This document shows, piece after piece, positions 1,987-39,191 of a stretch of 64,000 nt of DNA (the first letter of the stretch is position 1; each line of letters begins with the position of its first letter). The notes under the pieces were generated by a model, which was given only the letters and a program-made list of their open reading frames with translations, searched no databases and had not been told where the DNA came from. The DNA lies in sequence record LC819006.1. One strand, 5' to 3'. The position numbers and the translations under genes were made by a program.

Positions 1987-3510
1987 ATGACCCCAAGACT
2001 TCTTCTTCTCAAGATCATCACGCTCCTGCACCTCGAATCACAGATCGAAGGTGAGAATGCACGATCGTCTGACTTGGCTACCAGCCTGCTCGCCACCGTC
2101 AAAATTCCTGAGGCCGACGTGGGCCTCATAGACAGTGAACGAGAGATTATTGGCTCGCTCTACAACATATGTCGCAAACTCGCCACCGCTACGCCGGGCG
2201 ACGAGATGGACAAATCAGACCTCCTTCAGGAAGTCCGGTTGCATTGCGGCAGTGAAATCGATCTGTTCGAATCCTTCAAAGAAGGGATCGCGATTGAACT
2301 ATCACAAGATGGTCTCAAAAAGCGTGTTGGCTTCATCCGTAAAGAGCTCAAATCGTATCTACATTACGAGGGTACGAAAAAGCGCATCATGGATGCTGCC
2401 CATGCACTGCGTTTCAAGGAGAATTCGATTGAAGATATGGACAAGTATCTTCGCGACTTCTCAACTGACATTGAATCATCGCTCAGTAAATCCAGCAAGC
2501 AGGACGAAGCTATTCTCGGCACAATCGACATGGCAGATAAAGAGTCGGTTGTGAAAGCTGCATGTTCCGTGTCAGATGAGCAATCGGGTGCCGGTAAGCT
2601 CAAGACGCATTTGCAAGATCTGAATGACATGATGAATGGCGGCATGCGCCGCGGTGAATTCGTCTGTACTTCGGCTCTTCCGCACAACAACAAGACCGGC
2701 TTTTCGTTGGACATCTTCGCTGGTGTCGCAATCAACAACGATCCGTATCTGATTGATCCGAAGAAGAAGCCTTTGCTTCTGCGCATCTCGTTCGAAGATG
2801 ACGTCGAAATGAACTTCAACCACCTCTACAAGCACTTCTGGGAACAGGAGCATGGCGAGGTGGCAGTGATGGTCGGTAAATCCGAAGAGGAAATCGCCCA
2901 GTACGTCATGGACAAGATGACGGCACGTGGCTGGCATGTTCGCATGTACAAGGTCGATCCTTCGATGTGGTCGATCTTCGATCTGTTTGCATTCGTGCGT
3001 GATCTGGAATCGCAGGGTTATGAAATTGCTCTGTGTATGCTGGACTACATGCGTAAGATGCCGACTACGGGTTGCGTACAGGGCATTGCAGGCGCTGACG
3101 TCAGAGACATGGCTCGTCGTTGCCGTAACTTCTTCAATGCCCGTAAAACGGCGTTTTACACGCCGCACCAGATCTCGACTCAGGCTAAGGAAATCCAACG
3201 TTCGGTGCCTAAGGACTTTGTCAAGATGCTGCCGGGTGGCGGTTACTACGACGGCTGTAAATCGCTGGATGCAGAAATCGATCTGGAAATCTTCCAGCAT
3301 ATCGAGAAGCACAATGGTCATTCGTATCTGACCTTGCAGCGAGGCAAGCATCGTAATGCTCCGGTGCTGGCAGAAGAACTGAAGTATCTGGTTTACCAAT
3401 TCTACGACATCGGCGGCATTCCTCCTGACATTGGCGGAGAGCGTTCCGGTTTGCGTAAGGTTGGTGGCAAGCGTGCTTCGGAAGCTGAAACCGATTTCGA
3501 TTGGCTGTAA
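1987..3510 (+). CDS. dnaB: DnaB-like replicative helicase (phiKZ gp118-like)
   Basis: GGMRRGEF followed by degenerate Walker A ALPHNNKTG, Walker B MLDY, HQIS motif and C-terminal QRGKHR. Confidence 0.9.
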   Translation: MTPRLLLLKIITLLHLESQIEGENARSSDLATSLLATVKIPEADVGLIDSEREIIGSLYNICRKLATATPGDEMDKSDLLQEVRLHCGSEIDLFESFKEGIAIELSQDGLKKRVGFIRKELKSYLHYEGTKKRIMDAAHALRFKENSIEDMDKYLRDFSTDIESSLSKSSKQDEAILGTIDMADKESVVKAACSVSDEQSGAGKLKTHLQDLNDMMNGGMRRGEFVCTSALPHNNKTGFSLDIFAGVAINNDPYLIDPKKKPLLLRISFEDDVEMNFNHLYKHFWEQEHGEVAVMVGKSEEEIAQYVMDKMTARGWHVRMYKVDPSMWSIFDLFAFVRDLESQGYEIALCMLDYMRKMPTTGCVQGIAGADVRDMARRCRNFFNARKTAFYTPHQISTQAKEIQRSVPKDFVKMLPGGGYYDGCKSLDAEIDLEIFQHIEKHNGHSYLTLQRGKHRNAPVLAEELKYLVYQFYDIGGIPPDIGGERSGLRKVGGKRASEAETDFDWL

Positions 3511-3514
3511 AAGC

Positions 3515-3555
3515 AAAAAAAAAATAAGAGTCCCTACTCCCGCAAGGGAGTAGGG
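3515..3555. terminator. Bidirectional-type hairpin between convergent dnaB and NUMOD genes
   Basis: CCCTACTCCC-GCAA-GGGAGTAGGG with flanking A-tract. Confidence 0.75.
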
Positions 3556-3565
3556 TGCTCTGACT

Positions 3566-4078
3566 TTATGTTGACTCTCTCTTGTCAACATAAAAATAAC
3601 CCTTAAACTTTTCACTACTACTGTTAATTCGAAACTTAATTGTAGCTCTATTTATTCCAGTAGCTTCACTGGCTTTAGCAAACGACGGATAGACGACACC
3701 ATCGATTGAAACCGGTTTGCTATTTTTTTCGATGGATTTTTCATGAGCTTTTAGCAGTCCCTGTTTCTGCTCTTCTGTTTGAACTCTTGAAGAATGCACG
3801 GTTTTCATTCTCGCCTTGGTTTCTTCAGAATGGCGGAAATTGCGACGAAATTCAGCCATTTTTTCTCTAGTCGCATCTGAAACTTTTCGACCAATCAAAC
3901 TCGCCATCAGTTTACTTTTCTGATTAGAGTTAATTTTCCGTCCAAGGCCAGCGCGACCAATATTAATCTTTCGCGTATCTTCTACAATTTTTGCATCTAA
4001 AGATTTCTGCCAGGATTGGGTAATTTGATCAATTGTCTCATTGATTTCATCTATCGATAGCGGCTTTCCGTGATTCAT
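3566..4078 (-). CDS. NUMOD3/NUMOD1 DNA-binding protein, homing-endonuclease-derived, no visible nuclease domain
   Basis: HSEETKARM (NUMOD3) and KPVSIDGVVYPSFAKASEATGIN (NUMOD1-like). AT-rich. GAGG SD before ATG 4078. Confidence 0.7.
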   Translation of the reverse strand: MNHGKPLSIDEINETIDQITQSWQKSLDAKIVEDTRKINIGRAGLGRKINSNQKSKLMASLIGRKVSDATREKMAEFRRNFRHSEETKARMKTVHSSRVQTEEQKQGLLKAHEKSIEKNSKPVSIDGVVYPSFAKASEATGINRATIKFRINSSSEKFKGYFYVDKREST

Positions 4079-4144
4079 TTTGTCCTCGCAAATCAAAGAC
4101 AGATCTAACAAACCCTCTCCGAAGAAAGAGTTTGTAAAACTGTC

Positions 4145-4996
4145 TTAGTTCAAATGGGTTTCCCAGTAATCGGGATAGTCGCTGGGATGATTGATCATTT
4201 CAGCAGCAAGCTCCTTGATCGCACGCATACTGACCGAACCCAATCGATCCCAGTTATGATCCAGCCAATGCAACAGTTCCTGCTTTTGCGCCTTCGTCAG
4301 ATCGAAGATCTTGTTCTTCATTGTCACTGATGCAGTCCAGCCCCAGCTGACATCGCGATCGTACTTGAATTCCGTGTAAACAACGCGATCGCGTATTGCT
4401 GATTCGTCGATCTTGCGGGCACCCTTAGGAGCCGGATTGGACGGAGCAAGAGACTGGTTGCTGGTGATAATGAAGTTAATGTTGTCGGTCGGAATCTGGA
4501 TACCAACACCGTCCGCCGTCTGGAAAGCGCGCAGTGCTTCTGCAACGCGTTGCTCGTGGACCGATTCGCTCTTTTCATAAAGCTGAATCATCGCCGTCAT
4601 GTTCTTGTTCCATGCGAACATATTGCGATCTTCATCTAGAGCACCCTTCATGACCGACAGACTGGTACGATCAGCAAAAACCGAATCACAGTCATCGATC
4701 CAAACGTAGGTTTTCTTCCCACGAGAATTATGAACAGCCAAAGCTAGAGCGATAGCGATGGCATTCATGCTGGCCACGCCGATGATTTCGATCAGAGGAA
4801 TACGATGTTTCTTTGCCGTGTTCCGAACAGTCACGGACTTACCGATACCTGCGGGACCGACGATGTAGTGGTGTCGTTTCGGAACGATAAGGGCATCCGA
4901 CTTGTCGAAAGCCGCTGTGACTTTACCAACGAGTTGATTGGTCAGGATTTCGCCGCGCTCGATGTTTTGTTTTTGTTTGAGGGTAAACGGTTGCAT
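4145..4996 (-). CDS. AAA+ family ATPase
   Basis: Walker A GPAGIGKS, Walker B VWIDDCD, sensor-1 ITSN, putative Arg finger AIRDR. Confidence 0.85.
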   Translation of the reverse strand: MQPFTLKQKQNIERGEILTNQLVGKVTAAFDKSDALIVPKRHHYIVGPAGIGKSVTVRNTAKKHRIPLIEIIGVASMNAIAIALALAVHNSRGKKTYVWIDDCDSVFADRTSLSVMKGALDEDRNMFAWNKNMTAMIQLYEKSESVHEQRVAEALRAFQTADGVGIQIPTDNINFIITSNQSLAPSNPAPKGARKIDESAIRDRVVYTEFKYDRDVSWGWTASVTMKNKIFDLTKAQKQELLHWLDHNWDRLGSVSMRAIKELAAEMINHPSDYPDYWETHLN

Positions 4997-5023
4997 CTTC
5001 TACTCCATTTTAAAAAGATTAAA

Positions 5024-5055
5024 CACAGACAGATGCCCGAAGGCATCTGTCTGTG
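5024..5055 (-). terminator. Hairpin (UUCG loop on - strand), copy 1 of an identical 26-bp core
   Basis: CACAGACAGATGCC-CGAA-GGCATCTGTCTGTG. Confidence 0.7.
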
Positions 5056-5064
5056 ATCAAGAGG

Positions 5065-5250
5065 TTATGCGCCTTTAACTTGCTTCTCTTGAATCAAGCG
5101 AACCATCCGCTTGTAGACTTCGACGAAGGTAAAACGATATCCTGCTTTAGCCAGAGCGTTTTCAACGTCTTCGGCCGGAGTTAGAATACCGTTCTTGTCC
5201 ATCGTGTCGAGAATGATCTTCTCGATCTTATCTTCTTCACTCAGAAGCAT
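5065..5250 (-). CDS. Small winged-helix-like protein (wH1)
   Basis: Three-helix pattern EKIILDTM / AEDVENAL / FVEVYKRMVRLIQEKQV. Confidence 0.55.
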   Translation of the reverse strand: MLLSEEDKIEKIILDTMDKNGILTPAEDVENALAKAGYRFTFVEVYKRMVRLIQEKQVKGA

Positions 5251-5638
5251 CTTTCACCTCAGCAGAAGCCGATACAACCGGTTCAGGCGGCGTCAGATAC
5301 TCGCTGATCAGTTCCATCATCGAATCCGTCAGCACGTAGCCCTTCTTGGTCGGATGGGCCACGCCGTCGACATGCAGATCCACCAGCAAGTTGCTGATAT
5401 TCATCTGCGGCATGAAGACGTTTGCTTCACGCATCTTCTTGAGCAGCAGGTTTTCGTTGATGGGTTTGTTTTCGCCGAGATACAACGTACGGACGATGAA
5501 ACCCGAAGCCGTGATGTTCGCATGGCCGCCGTAACCTTCGATGGTCTTGGTTTCGACGGATTCCTTGCTACGAAAGCACGCCGCCGCCATCGACTGGATC
5601 CGTCGGAAGCCCTTGCCGTTTCGATCGATTTTTAGCAT
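5237..5638 (-). CDS. Winged-helix-like protein (wH2)
   Basis: NISNLLVDLHVDGV...GYVLTDSMMELI. GAGG SD before ATG 5638. Confidence 0.6.
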   Translation of the reverse strand: MLKIDRNGKGFRRIQSMAAACFRSKESVETKTIEGYGGHANITASGFIVRTLYLGENKPINENLLLKKMREANVFMPQMNISNLLVDLHVDGVAHPTKKGYVLTDSMMELISEYLTPPEPVVSASAEVKDASE

Positions 5639-5966
5639 TTTTAATTGATACCTCAAAAATAAGTTCTCTCATGTCCTGCGTCAGCTTGAACATGTTTCCC
5701 GGAAGGGAGTGTACTGCGCCACGGTCTTTCAGAAACCGAAACGCCTTTTTGACATTATAGTCGGTGGCGCTGGTAATCTTTGCATGCCTCAGGTCAACTG
5801 CTACCTGAATGAAGTTATAGGGCTGGTCAGGAAAAACCAGTAAGCGTTTTAAAACCAGGACGTTTAGTCCGCCCTGAAAGCCTGATACCATTGTTGCTTG
5901 TTGGGCTAACTCACGCATCTGCGCGTCTGCTTTATTGAGCTTAGGTTGTTCTTTCAGGGCCGACAT
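5568..5966 (-). CDS. Winged-helix-like protein (wH3)
   Basis: NVKKAFRFLKDRGAV...MFKLTQDMRELI. Confidence 0.6.
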   Translation of the reverse strand: MSALKEQPKLNKADAQMRELAQQATMVSGFQGGLNVLVLKRLLVFPDQPYNFIQVAVDLRHAKITSATDYNVKKAFRFLKDRGAVHSLPGNMFKLTQDMRELIFEVSIKNAKNRSKRQGLPTDPVDGGGVLS

Positions 5967-5975
5967 CAGTCGCTC

Positions 5976-6305
5976 CTAGTGTTTAGTCATCGCCTGAGAA
6001 AGAATCAGGTCGAAGATCGACGTCATCTCCGGATGGAGGCGATACGCCACGTTCGGAAACGAAGTCTTGGTTGCGAGAATGCCCTTCTGCAGCAAATCCG
6101 TACATGCGTCACGCAGCATGTCGGTGATGTGGATACTGTCGCATCCATAGATAGCGAATGCCATGTCTTGAAGCGACTTGGATTCGCCATCCTTATCCTT
6201 CAGGTAGAACACTACCTTGTGCTGGGTATCCCAGTTGTCTTGCGGCTTTGCTGCAATGATGACGGCTTCTGCCATCTGGCGACGCCACATTTGTTGTGCT
6301 GACAT
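5976..6305 (-). CDS. Winged-helix-like protein (wH4)
   Basis: LRDACTDLLQKGIL...AYRLHPEMTSIF. GAGG SD. Confidence 0.6.
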   Translation of the reverse strand: MSAQQMWRRQMAEAVIIAAKPQDNWDTQHKVVFYLKDKDGESKSLQDMAFAIYGCDSIHITDMLRDACTDLLQKGILATKTSFPNVAYRLHPEMTSIFDLILSQAMTKH

Positions 6306-6314
6306 TTTGTCCTC

Positions 6315-6863
6315 TTATTCAAAAGCCTTCTGTTGTTTGAGGATGGCGTAAAGATCGATAGCTTCCTGTTTAGTAAGCTTCGACCTGCCTACATGGATGT
6401 GTTCGAGGTTTTGTTGTGTCTCGAACAACCACAAAACATTCTTGTAAAACTGATACAGGTCGCCGATCTTGACGTTGTTGCCTTTGACCTTGATATTGAC
6501 ATCGAGTAGGAATTGCTTACCCTTCTCACCCGTGTAGCTCGACATCAAGCTCACGAAATCAAGCGTCAGCGAATACAGCGTTGGACGATCGCCGATAATC
6601 GTACCCATCGGTTGCCAGCCTTTCAGAACCCCAGCATCGAGCAGGTCCTGCAAAGCAGTCTCGACTTCGGTCGTCGAGTACTTACCAAATGCCGTAAGAC
6701 GATGGATGATTTCTTTACCATCATGTCCTTCCGGATGGCGGCTTTGTTCCGACAACAGCTGAACGATACATTCTTCAGCCGACAGATCGCTACCATACTT
6801 GATCGATGCACATGCAACAGCAACCAGCTTCTTGATGATTGCGTTGTTTTTATCGAGTTTCAT
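6315..6863 (-). CDS. Winged-helix-like protein (wH5, PadR-like pattern) with C-terminal extension
   Basis: EVETALQDLLDAGVL...PTLYSLT. GGAG SD before ATG 6863. Confidence 0.62.
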   Translation of the reverse strand: MKLDKNNAIIKKLVAVACASIKYGSDLSAEECIVQLLSEQSRHPEGHDGKEIIHRLTAFGKYSTTEVETALQDLLDAGVLKGWQPMGTIIGDRPTLYSLTLDFVSLMSSYTGEKGKQFLLDVNIKVKGNNVKIGDLYQFYKNVLWLFETQQNLEHIHVGRSKLTKQEAIDLYAILKQQKAFE

Positions 6864-6912
6864 TTTAGCTCCGTGAAAGGAATTGTAAAGTTTACTACAG
6901 GGATTCACGGCA

Positions 6913-6929
6913 GTTATATATGTCTGAAA
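6913..6929 (-). promoter_or_regulatory. Early (virion RNAP-type) promoter TTTCAGA-CATATATAAC
   Basis: One of six intergenic copies of a 17-nt motif resembling the phiKZ early TATTAC element. Confidence 0.65.
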
Positions 6930-6942
6930 TAAAATGCATACT

Positions 6943-6972
6943 CATACACACTGGCTTGCGCCAGTGTGTATG
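6943..6972 (-). terminator. Hairpin (GCAA loop on - strand)
   Basis: CATACACACTGGC-TTGC-GCCAGTGTGTATG. Confidence 0.7.
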
Positions 6973-6980
6973 ATGAGCGC

Positions 6981-7301
6981 TTATGCTGCGATTTTAAAAT
7001 TGCAAATACGGTCGATCTCCAGCCTTGTCCGCAAACGCAGACGCGACTCCTTATGCAGGCGTACGTGATTGATGGAGAAGATACGACGTTCAACCTTGTA
7101 TCCCTCCGGAGTCACGAAACGACTCTTCAGGTAACCCCGTTTTTCAAGAAGCTCCAACGCCTCCATCAGACCGTCAGCAGACAACTTACCTTCTGCATCA
7201 CGGACAATATCGGACGAAGTCTTCTCGACCCCATAAGGCGCTTTAAGAAGATCAAGAATCTGTTCTTCCAGCGCTGTTAGTTTTTGTTGGTCCAGTTCCA
7301 T
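6981..7301 (-). CDS. Winged-helix-like protein (wH6, PadR/MarR-like pattern)
   Basis: LEEQILDLLK...GLMEALELLEKRGYLKSR...RRIFSI. Confidence 0.68.
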   Translation of the reverse strand: MELDQQKLTALEEQILDLLKAPYGVEKTSSDIVRDAEGKLSADGLMEALELLEKRGYLKSRFVTPEGYKVERRIFSINHVRLHKESRLRLRTRLEIDRICNFKIAA

Positions 7302-7330
7302 TTTCTAAGGTCTCGTAGAAGTTCTTGTTA

Positions 7331-7507
7331 TTAGACCCGTGCGGTGTTGTTCATGGACTTCTGGTCACCGTGCCTGTTGCGGCTCGTAAGACCATTGGGA
7401 TGAACATCCGATTTCTCGGTTTGTTTGATGTCCTGCCTGATTGCAGGGCTGAGTGGATTCTCGGCTTTAAAGCCGCCCCACTTTGTGGTGCCGTTTCCTG
7501 GTGACAT
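7331..7507 (-). CDS. Small hypothetical protein (58 aa)
   Basis: Manual translation MSPGNGTTKWGGF...NNTARV*. AAGGA SD. Below the ORF-track cutoff. Confidence 0.5.
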   Translation of the reverse strand: MSPGNGTTKWGGFKAENPLSPAIRQDIKQTEKSDVHPNGLTSRNRHGDQKSMNNTARV

Positions 7508-7600
7508 TTTTATTACCCGTCCTTACTGGTGAAAAACCACAGGATCAGCGAAAAAAATAATAGTCCGCCCCGTTAAGAGCGGACCCTCCATTAGCGTAGA

Positions 7601-7768
7601 TTAACTACGCTTCTTAGCTGCCCGGCTTTTGCTGATGTGGGCTTCGATGCGCCTATCTTCTTCCATGAGTTTTCGGGCTTGTTCCTGAGTCATGTGATGC
7701 CGTTTCGCAATATCTTCATTGTGAGCGGCAGCTTGGAACAACTTTCTCTGACTAGGTGTGTACGGCAT
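7601..7768 (-). CDS. Small basic phage protein (55 aa)
   Basis: Manual translation MPYTPSQRKLFQAAAHNEDIAKRHHMTQEQARK...*. Strong GGAGG SD. Confidence 0.7.
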   Translation of the reverse strand: MPYTPSQRKLFQAAAHNEDIAKRHHMTQEQARKLMEEDRRIEAHISKSRAAKKRS

Positions 7769-7855
7769 TTTCAAACCTCCTCAACGGAAAAAATGCGACC
7801 GAACCCCGAAGGATCCAGTCGCCCAACTTACCGGGCTGAGGCTCCCGGTAATCCT

Positions 7856-9460: not shown

Positions 9461-9491
9461 GTTGTACACCTTTTAAAAAGAGACATAGAGC

Positions 9492-9521
9492 ATAGACAGA
9501 TGCCCGAAGGCATCTGTCTAT
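9492..9521 (-). terminator. Hairpin, copy 2 of the identical 26-bp core
   Basis: ATAGACAGATGCC-CGAA-GGCATCTGTCTAT. Confidence 0.7.
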
Positions 9522-11390: not shown

Positions 11391-11407
11391 GTAATATATC
11401 TCCGAAA
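11391..11407 (-). promoter_or_regulatory. Early promoter TTTCGGA-GATATATTAC
   Basis: Intergenic, downstream of a terminator hairpin. Confidence 0.75.
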
Positions 11408-28004: not shown

Positions 28005-28021
28005 GTAATATATCGGTGAAA
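28005..28021 (-). promoter_or_regulatory. Early promoter TTTCACC-GATATATTAC
   Basis: Immediately after the thyA stop. Confidence 0.72.
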
Positions 28022-30072: not shown

Positions 30073-30089
30073 GTAATATATGGCTGATC
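30073..30089 (-). promoter_or_regulatory. Early promoter GATCAGC-CATATATTAC
   Basis: Intergenic, after terminator 30118-30144. Confidence 0.68.
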
Positions 30090-39174: not shown

Positions 39175-39191
39175 GTTATATATCTTTGAAA
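39175..39191 (-). promoter_or_regulatory. Early promoter TTTCAAA-GATATATAAC
   Basis: Intergenic, after terminator 39211-39240. Confidence 0.68.

Follow-up and report, generated by a model that had tools for sequence, protein, structure and literature searches.

A previously unannotated, tandem-expanded winged-helix family in a conserved operon frame of Chiangmaivirus and related phiKZ-like phages

Introduction

Published work on phages related to phiKZ has shown that the early promoters of their virion RNA polymerase are made up of a T-rich tract and, downstream of it, an AT-rich element that is extended and highly conserved, and that the chimallin gene of phiKZ has an early-type promoter of this kind. 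Early operons of phiKZ further combine strong hairpin terminators with small lineage-specific genes lying head to tail. Here we analyse an array of small minus-strand genes, gp130 to gp135, in a stretch of 64,000 nucleotides from sequence record LC819006.1 (the whole of which we refer to as the window), and its conserved AT-rich promoter motif, upstream T-rich tract, terminators and gene arrangement all resemble those of such operons. It differs from them in that its genes include demonstrable paralogs of one fold, and in that partial dependence on host RNA polymerase has been reported for its genus, Chiangmaivirus; early timing is assigned here by analogy.

With respect to the fold, the array proteins can be compared with regulators of PadR subfamily 2 (LmrR, Pex and Rv3488), which likewise have approximately 100-110 residues, a winged helix with a long wing, and a single C-terminal helix after the wing. 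This architecture, as predicted for the phage family, would be compatible with dimerisation via the C-terminal helix and binding of operator DNA. However, the array proteins give no significant profile match to PadR (Pfam PF03551), and the phage family has an extra conserved N-terminal helix, consists mostly of acidic or neutral members and occurs in tandem arrays or fused repeats, with gp134 adding a domain of two beta-beta-alpha units.

A second comparison is with eukaryote-type transcription and chromosome machineries in which several winged-helix domains, many of them protein-binding, are set side by side: TFIIE alpha/beta, Rpc34/Rpc82, TFIIIC, the MukE/ScpB kite proteins, cullin WH-B and Hop2. 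Multi-winged-helix chains are also found in phage relatives of the array, and several of these proteins, including MukE and ScpB, appear among the matches described below. The likeness is at the level of the fold only (E 1e-3 to 1e-2), the domains are encoded as separate genes in the window, and no partner polymerase or SMC protein is encoded next to the locus.

Our firm result is that the array contains a new, unannotated winged-helix family, tandem-expanded within a conserved operon frame that carries an early-type promoter, at a conserved locus of one phiKZ-like clade.

Results

The locus and its annotation

Positions 3500-7600 of the window are 100% identical to positions 127462-131562 of Burkholderia phage FLC8 (LC667450.1), and Ralstonia phage FLC4-11C is also 100% identical over this interval. 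Further related records are FLC6, FLC4-4C, FLC4-5C, RSL2, RSF1, RsoM3USA and SURPRISE13. FLC8 and its relatives belong to the genus Chiangmaivirus, phiKZ-related jumbo phages of Burkholderia and Ralstonia with genomes of approximately 225 kb, and a chimallin homolog is encoded in FLC8 (PF25677, E 2e-21).

A first-pass annotation of the window had listed six consecutive open reading frames (ORFs) on the minus strand; all six are present as described and correspond to gp130-gp135 of FLC8 (Table 1), which, together with gp128 and gp129, are all annotated there as "hypothetical protein"; gp130-gp135 are so annotated in FLC4-11C too. The six have orthologs across the genus, with gp130 more narrowly distributed (FLC8, FLC6, SURPRISE13 and L007 only; numbers with the prefix L are our handles for related loci, and those with the prefix P for related proteins). 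When the proteins were searched singly against Pfam, gp130, gp131 and gp133 matched no family at E <= 1, while gp132, gp134 and gp135 gave noise matches to families of other kinds and no winged-helix match. In single-protein searches of PHROGs each ORF is either a singleton PHROG without an assigned role or has no match. Our literature searches found neither a description of the family nor a transcriptome of any Chiangmaivirus.

Table 1. Features of the array and its surroundings, in window coordinates
Feature	Position	Strand	Description
gp129 and gp128	3566-4996	-	putative accessory genes between array and DnaB
Intrinsic terminator	5024..5055	-	closes gp134-gp130; 14-bp stem, UUCG loop, T-run
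gp130, 61 aa	5065..5250	-	last operon gene; candidate member
gp131, 133 aa (long start)	5237..5638	-	predicted winged-helix paralog
gp132, 132 aa	5568..5966	-	predicted winged-helix paralog, strongly basic; basic C-terminal tail KNAKNRSKRQ
gp133, 109 aa	5976..6305	-	predicted winged-helix paralog, near-neutral charge; full-length alignment with family
gp134, 182 aa	6315..6863	-	first operon gene; predicted winged helix (residues 1-112) and C-domain (123-177)
Promoter-like element	6913..6936	-	ATATATAAC behind the T-rich tract TTTTATTTCA, with a few bases between them; 58 nt upstream of gp134 start
Terminator hairpin	6942..6973	-	between gp135 and array promoter; 14-bp perfect stem
gp135, 106 aa	6981..7301	-	separate upstream transcription unit, shared with gp136
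ATATAT[AT]AC copies	6913-6921, 11391-11399, 28005-28013, 30073-30081, 39175-39183	-	motif scan

Four of the array genes are paralogs

Homology between the array genes was assessed by profile-profile comparison (hhalign) of ortholog alignments over 66 family pairs, with gp136, gp137, the neighbouring ATPase gp129 and SUR13_129 included as control families. The ten top-ranking of these pairs are made up exclusively of candidate families, and none includes a control. The comparison links gp131 to gp132 (P 3.4e-5, over 69 columns), gp132 to X120, a gene present in relatives (P 1.7e-4), gp133 to gp132 (P 9.7e-4) and gp131 to X120 (P 1.2e-3), while gp134 is joined to the other paralogs in register, more weakly. 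When a hidden Markov model (HMM) was built from gp131, gp132, gp133 and X120, leaving gp134 out, it ranked seven of seven gp134 orthologs above all 245 ORFs of the window, and likewise both copies of a 213-aa paralog found in relatives.

A joint MAFFT alignment of the family is coherent over approximately 100 residues. From N- to C-terminus its landmarks are L-N-K-x-D-x-x-x-x-E-L-A in an N-terminal helix, D-L-x-x-x-G-V/I in the third helix of the core (H3), the wing, and Y-x-L-T-x-D-(F/M)-x-x-L. The paralogs are also bridged by distant metagenomic members, which give matches to several of the paralog HMMs. Scanning the whole FLC8 genome in pieces returned gp131, gp132, gp133 and gp134 as the only family members. 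No significant match was obtained by BLAST of paralog against paralog, and no DNA-level repeats were found between the paralogs, indicating that the duplications are old.

Our conclusion from these profile comparisons is that gp131, gp132, gp133 and the N-terminal domain of gp134 demonstrably form one tandem paralogous family, previously unannotated, which in relatives also takes in X120 and the 213-aa gp134-like gene. A C-terminal echo that the first-pass annotation had noticed in four of the ORFs is therefore real homology among gp131-gp134, given the profile P-values, the HMM ranking and the bridging sequences. The same annotation had suggested a paralogous expansion of winged-helix genes, and of the six this holds for gp131-gp134 only. 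gp135 is marginal (hhalign P 0.002; HMM E 0.07-2), and gp130 sits at noise level, its HMM scores lying at the top of the noise (E 0.08-0.27) and its hhalign P of 0.008 comparing with 0.016 for an unrelated control. By these measures gp135 and gp130 are not demonstrably members of the family.

The paralogs have a predicted winged-helix fold

The AlphaFold2 model of gp134, computed from a 27-row family alignment, has a mean predicted local distance difference test score (pLDDT) of 80.8. It comprises an N-terminal helix (residues 8-17), H1 (29-37), a bridge (47-48), H2 (49-58), H3 (64-76), wing strands at 80-83 and 96-99, and a C-terminal helix (101-110). This matches the winged helix-turn-helix (wHTH) order H1-b1-H2-H3-b2-b3 exactly, with an additional helix at either end, while the C-domain is modelled as two beta-hairpin-plus-helix units (beta-beta-alpha twice). 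Of the best 50 Foldseek neighbours of gp134 in the PDB nearly all are wHTH proteins, and every top match is a winged helix: TFIIE ranks first, and Pex/PadR, ArsR, ZitR/MepR/TcaR of the MarR type, Fur, BlaI, MukE and RNA polymerase III (Pol III) subunits also appear. The probabilities are approximately 1 and the E-values modest, from 3.5e-3 to 6e-2. PadR subfamily 2 is among the best neighbours of the gp134 N-terminal domain, with template-modelling (TM) scores (TMt) of 0.5-0.6.

Sequence comparison points to the same fold. The best PDB match of the family profile is the WH-B domain of the cullin Cdc53 (E 0.0015), followed by the Hop2 winged helix, CRP, AsnC and the MCM winged helix, with many PadR-like chains at E 0.3-1, and in the exhaustive protein search described below the weakest significant matches are TBPIP/Hop2 winged-helix proteins. 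Profiles of single families found nothing significant in the PDB for gp135, gp132 or gp134, the top matches of the gp134 profile being already wHTH proteins (E 0.07-0.2), and a profile of the gp134 C-domain had no sequence match there. For gp133 there is independent, indirect support for the fold. BFVD contains a model of an RSL2 protein that, at 104 aa, is as long as the gp133 ortholog ORF122, and superposition of this model on the gp134 N-terminal domain gives TMt 0.66 and a root mean square deviation of 3.5 A.

The family domain, as it appears from the alignment and the gp134 model, has approximately 100 residues. In it a canonical H1-b1-H2-H3-wing core is preceded by an N-terminal helix and followed by a C-terminal one bearing the Y-x-L-T-x-D-(F/M)-x-x-L landmark, a layout that resembles small PadR-type regulators. 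By homology to gp134, gp131-gp133 are predicted to be winged-helix proteins. Of the earlier suggestion that all six ORFs contain a winged helix, gp134 is thus supported by AlphaFold2 and Foldseek and gp131-gp133 by homology, while for gp135 there is a low-confidence model only.

Individual members differ in several respects. In gp132, the invariant residues T68, D69, Y70, N71, K73, K74 and R77 fall in the stretch aligned with the recognition helix of gp134. Its ortholog is present but unannotated in RSL2 (L003, 5277-5672), and the RSF1 annotation gives it only 75 of its 117 aa (L004, 4365-4715). At its 3' end gp132 overlaps gp131 by 71 nt (5568-5638) in a different frame. We favour the long N-terminus of gp131, given that the tblastn alignment of a distant homolog begins upstream of the shorter annotated start; in FLC6, RsoM3USA and L007, gp131 has a different, shorter N-terminus and does not overlap gp132. 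Beyond the genus gp131 is the most widely conserved subfamily, with distant homologs P0022-P0026 at E 1e-20 to 1e-24. The short gp130 may be a truncated helix-wing-helix remnant.

The operon frame is conserved

The promoter-like element ahead of gp134 is nearly invariant in six genus members and is kept in the distant loci L017, L018 and L019, in which a terminator hairpin, followed by a ATATATAA(C/T) promoter, precedes the first winged-helix gene. The FLC8 genome has 12 copies of its core, ATATAT[AT]AC, without exception on the minus strand, and five of them lie in the window. Ahead of the copies comes a short tract that they share (mostly TCA plus 3 nt), and usually a T-rich stretch as well. 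Ten of the 12 lie 26-112 nt upstream of a start codon, the remaining two being 184 and 290 nt upstream, and the genes behind them encode chimallin, a tubulin-like protein, an NAD-dependent ligase, an RNase H protein and several ORFans. By its sequence architecture the array element matches an early promoter of the phiKZ-type virion RNA polymerase, and ATATAT(A/T)AC with its flanks is a candidate early-promoter consensus for Chiangmaivirus. A scan for sigma-70 promoters was not used, given that its 12 sites did not exceed the expectation from shuffled sequences (9.6).

The terminator at 5055-5024, behind gp130, has a folding energy of -28.6 kcal/mol (z = -8.0), and SURPRISE13 and L007 have the same hairpin behind gp130 despite a different downstream gene. 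The hairpin at 6942-6973 (-28.7 kcal/mol, z = -6.8) shows compensatory stem changes across six genomes, and L017-L019 have equivalents of it. Between these two hairpins the genes from gp134 to gp130 are packed with 10-nt gaps or overlaps. The arrangement of these signals makes it plausible that gp134-gp130 are a single compact operon, opened by the conserved promoter motif and closed by the strong, conserved terminator. The first-pass annotation had placed five genes under one early promoter at 6913; the motif at 6913-6921 and the terminator at 5055-5024 fit such a unit, with the early timing assigned by analogy.

As a separate observation, the hairpin sequence AGACAGATGCC...GGCATCTGTCT is near-identical at 5024-5055 and at approximately 9488-9505 on the minus strand, and so is used at two or more sites. 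Two ORFs on the plus strand run through it and so contain a spurious peptide, RQMPEGICL.

Relatives vary the number of copies and fuse the domains

An exhaustive search of 1.84 billion representative proteins with the family profile returned just 44 matches at E <= 1e-3. These are genus members, single proteins like gp131, gp132, gp133 or X120 from uncultured phages, and large multi-domain proteins. With gp134 as the query, a word-indexed search turned up homologs in genus members alone; tblastn against deposited phages gave no match beyond Chiangmaivirus, and IMG/VR yielded RSL2 and RSF1 only.

Within the genus the array comprises six to eight small genes. The additional 213-aa gp134-like paralog is found in L007 and RSF1, X120 is carried by RSL2, RSF1, RsoM3USA and L007, and L011 has a further paralog of 191 aa. 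In uncultured relatives the winged-helix domains occur either as single genes or fused, with two to four or more per chain of 450–940 residues. Fused proteins with two to four HMM-detectable copies are P0028 (552 aa), P0032 (452 aa), P0021 (604 aa) and P0030 (941 aa), and in a 304-aa protein of L017 the family HMMs match two separate regions. The fused proteins end in a domain that can be aligned with the C-domain of gp134. The first-pass annotation had seen the signal in the array as a whole and not in one of its genes, a view that is borne out by this variation in copy number from 6 to 8 and by the fusions.

The order of the locus is kept across a wider clade of uncultured phiKZ-like phages. 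In their contigs we observe gp137, gp136, gp135, winged-helix genes (single or fused), a convergent divDNAB helicase (DnaB), a gp126 homolog and the phiKZ-type major capsid protein.

Two further genes were seen at these loci. In L011, a metagenomic relative, a 115-aa gene (6991-7338) lies between gp135 and the array promoter and contains a DG-T-H-R motif reminiscent of ParB/sulfiredoxin-type proteins, with no Pfam match. In L018 a small gene (1795-2349) has a C-terminal domain like that of the RNA polymerase alpha subunit (PF03118, precomputed), its N-terminal part being homologous to a 92-aa protein of L019 (10406-10684); this gene could hint at a transcription-related neighbourhood.

Evolutionary rate and charge

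Nei-Gojobori estimates against four relatives give a ratio of non-synonymous to synonymous substitution rates (dN/dS) of 0.1-0.45 for all array genes, indicating purifying selection, and on these values we reject gene-wide positive selection. Non-synonymous divergence (dN) is 0.35-0.65 for gp134, approximately ten times the 0.03-0.07 of DnaB, and 0.07-0.14 for gp135. The neighbouring genes gp139 and gp140, which are not winged-helix genes, evolve as fast as the array. Within gp134 conservation is highest in the C-domain, H3 and H1, while H2 is hypervariable.

The paralogs differ in charge. gp132 has an isoelectric point (pI) of approximately 10 and a net charge of +6 to +10, while the winged-helix domain of gp134 is acidic (pI 5.5) and gp130, gp131, gp133 and X120 are, as whole proteins, neutral or acidic. 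The sequence of gp132 makes it the best candidate of the array for nucleic-acid binding. The locus had been labelled a DNA-targeting system in the first-pass annotation, and that label is unproven, given that gp132 and the C-terminal helix of gp135 are the only basic parts and the others are neutral to acidic.

gp135 and the genes upstream

The AlphaFold2 model of gp135 has a pLDDT of only 58.9. At this low confidence it contains helices at 10-19, 29-36 and 42-55, strands at 58-63 and 72-77 and a helix at 79-105, an order of elements expected of a wHTH protein with a 27-residue C-terminal helix, and its Foldseek neighbours are LmrR/PadR, PerR, ArsR and TFE (TMq 0.5-0.57). Proteins of PadR subfamily 2 are its best full-length neighbours (LmrR, TM 0.54). 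The C-terminal helix is long, highly basic and 96% conserved, and orthologs lie at an unchanged position in L017 and L019. Subject to the quality of the model, gp135 is a probable winged helix, separately transcribed and much more conserved than the array.

Upstream of it, gp136 (58 aa) and gp137 (55 aa), at 7331-7774 on the minus strand, are small, very basic (pI ~10) and conserved in the genus, and each of their units is closed by a terminator of its own. In L019 and L020 small ORFs of similar size hold the equivalent positions upstream of gp135.

gp129 and gp128

Downstream of the array, gp129 passes the Pfam AAA cut-off (25.4 bits against 21.2). In the PDB it has no close relative, with generic AAA matches only (E > 0.2). 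gp128 combines NUMOD3 with an I-TevI DNA-binding domain, a module of the homing-endonuclease type, and no nuclease domain was detected in it by Pfam and PHROGs scans. The gene for gp129 is found only in FLC6, FLC8, FLC4-11C and FLC4-5C, amounting to four of nine deposited genus genomes (11 records); no metagenomic locus has it. FLC4-4C, RSL2, RSF1, RsoM3USA, L011 and L017-L019 lack it, and in SURPRISE13 and L007 an unrelated protein of 329-339 aa takes its place. Among the four phages that carry it gp129 is 100% identical, while the region around it is only ~95% identical between FLC8 and FLC6; this difference, and its position beside a homing-endonuclease-like gene, suggest a recent mobile acquisition. 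From these comparisons gp129 and gp128 appear to form an accessory and possibly mobile insertion that lies past the terminator of the operon and is unrelated to the array. Distant relatives of gp129 occur in unrelated jumbo phages, such as those like PA5oct.

Discussion

We hold with moderate confidence, though no more than that, that the array encodes a set of winged-helix proteins made early, which act together and probably do so on the phage's own DNA or transcription. In such a scheme gp131-gp134 would be produced early and work as a multi-winged-helix assembly, with the flanking helices as its likely oligomerisation surface. The basic gp132, and perhaps the basic C-terminal helix of gp135, would contact nucleic acid, while the neutral or acidic paralogs and the C-domain of gp134 would provide protein contacts or modulation. 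The likeliest target would be the phage's own DNA or its transcription programme, that is, the early-to-middle switch or the organisation of the genome, rather than the host. Joint action is suggested by the relatives in which the domains are fused in one chain, and a phage-intrinsic target is favoured by the synteny of the locus across phages with different hosts together with purifying selection.

Several points weigh against this proposal. Fusion hints at joint action without proving it. DNA binding may fit one or two members at most, given that most of the paralogs are non-basic and that gp134 has an acidic recognition helix. The Foldseek matches to the gp134 model (E 3e-3 to 6e-2) are weak, assigning the winged-helix fold and no specific functional family. 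Rapid divergence also extends beyond the array, gp139 and gp140 being equally fast, and fast evolution and copy-number turnover suit a host-directed role equally well. Early timing, moreover, is predicted by promoter analogy. RSL2 and RSF1 have been reported in published work to be rifampicin-sensitive and to need host RNA polymerase, and for this reason the genus may follow a transcription scheme other than the one known from phiKZ.

The alternative that survives best, which we consider somewhat unlikely and yet well worth keeping in view, is that the proteins are directed at the host, with early cytoplasmic winged-helix paralogs binding host regulators, nucleoid proteins or defence sensors in takeover or counter-defence, and duplicating in an arms race. 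The restriction of the family to Chiangmaivirus and a few uncultured relatives, the turnover between 6 and 8 copies, the contrast in dN between gp134 and DnaB and the hypervariable H2 would all be in keeping with this. So would the charge of most members, which are neutral or acidic like protein-binding winged-helix domains, and the cullin WH-B domain as best PDB match of the family profile; and the reported need of RSL2 and RSF1 for host RNA polymerase makes manipulation of a host factor plausible. However, the dN/dS values show no gene-wide positive selection, phages from quite different samples have kept the locus together with the promoter and terminator that frame it, and independent decoys are seldom fused in single large proteins. 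PADLOC or anti-defence annotation, for its part, was neither tested nor found.

A more specific and, in our judgement, improbable proposal is that gp131-gp134, perhaps with gp135, would be a promoter-specificity or initiation factor of a sigma-less multisubunit phage RNA polymerase, an early-made analogue of TFIIE, TFIIF or Rpc34 that switches transcription to the middle genes. The published finding that the non-virion RNA polymerase of phiKZ cannot by itself use middle promoters in vitro is relevant here, and the resemblance of the predicted structures to such factors, with TFIIE as the top Foldseek match of gp134, is at the level of the fold only.

That the winged-helix proteins are adaptors or targeting subunits of the AAA+ ATPase, forming with it and the NUMOD protein one DNA-targeting system, as the first-pass annotation had suggested, is very improbable and largely refuted by the comparative data. 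The genes are indeed neighbours on one strand in FLC8, FLC6, FLC4-11C and FLC4-5C, and gp129 passes the AAA threshold; however, gp129 lies beyond the strong, conserved -28.6 kcal/mol terminator, is missing or replaced in other relatives and so is unlinked from the array there, an outcome that the annotation itself had counted against the link, and shows 100% identity across the four FLC phages, beside a homing-endonuclease-like gene. Least credible of all is a chance likeness of unrelated small helical ORFans with neither family nor winged helix, for which the missing Pfam matches, the singleton PHROGs and the non-significant paralog BLAST might speak, against which stand the profile-profile statistics with controls, the HMM ranking against window and genome ORFs, the bridging sequences, the confident gp134 model with its wHTH neighbours and the profile matches to bona fide winged-helix families, and which we have ruled out for gp131-gp134, while it remains for gp130 and partly for gp135.

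Nucleus-forming jumbo phages have many early genes without an assigned role. Should the array encode ordinary regulators or host binders, it would add one more routine entry to a winged-helix repertoire that is already very large in phages. In either case a family is now defined, with its boundaries and fold, its operon frame and its natural fusion variants, and the annotation is corrected for the gp132 ortholog, which had been missed in RSL2 and truncated in RSF1. The questions that this family touches concern the choice of middle promoters by the sigma-less RNA polymerases of these phages and the organisation of their genome, both before the phage nucleus and within it.

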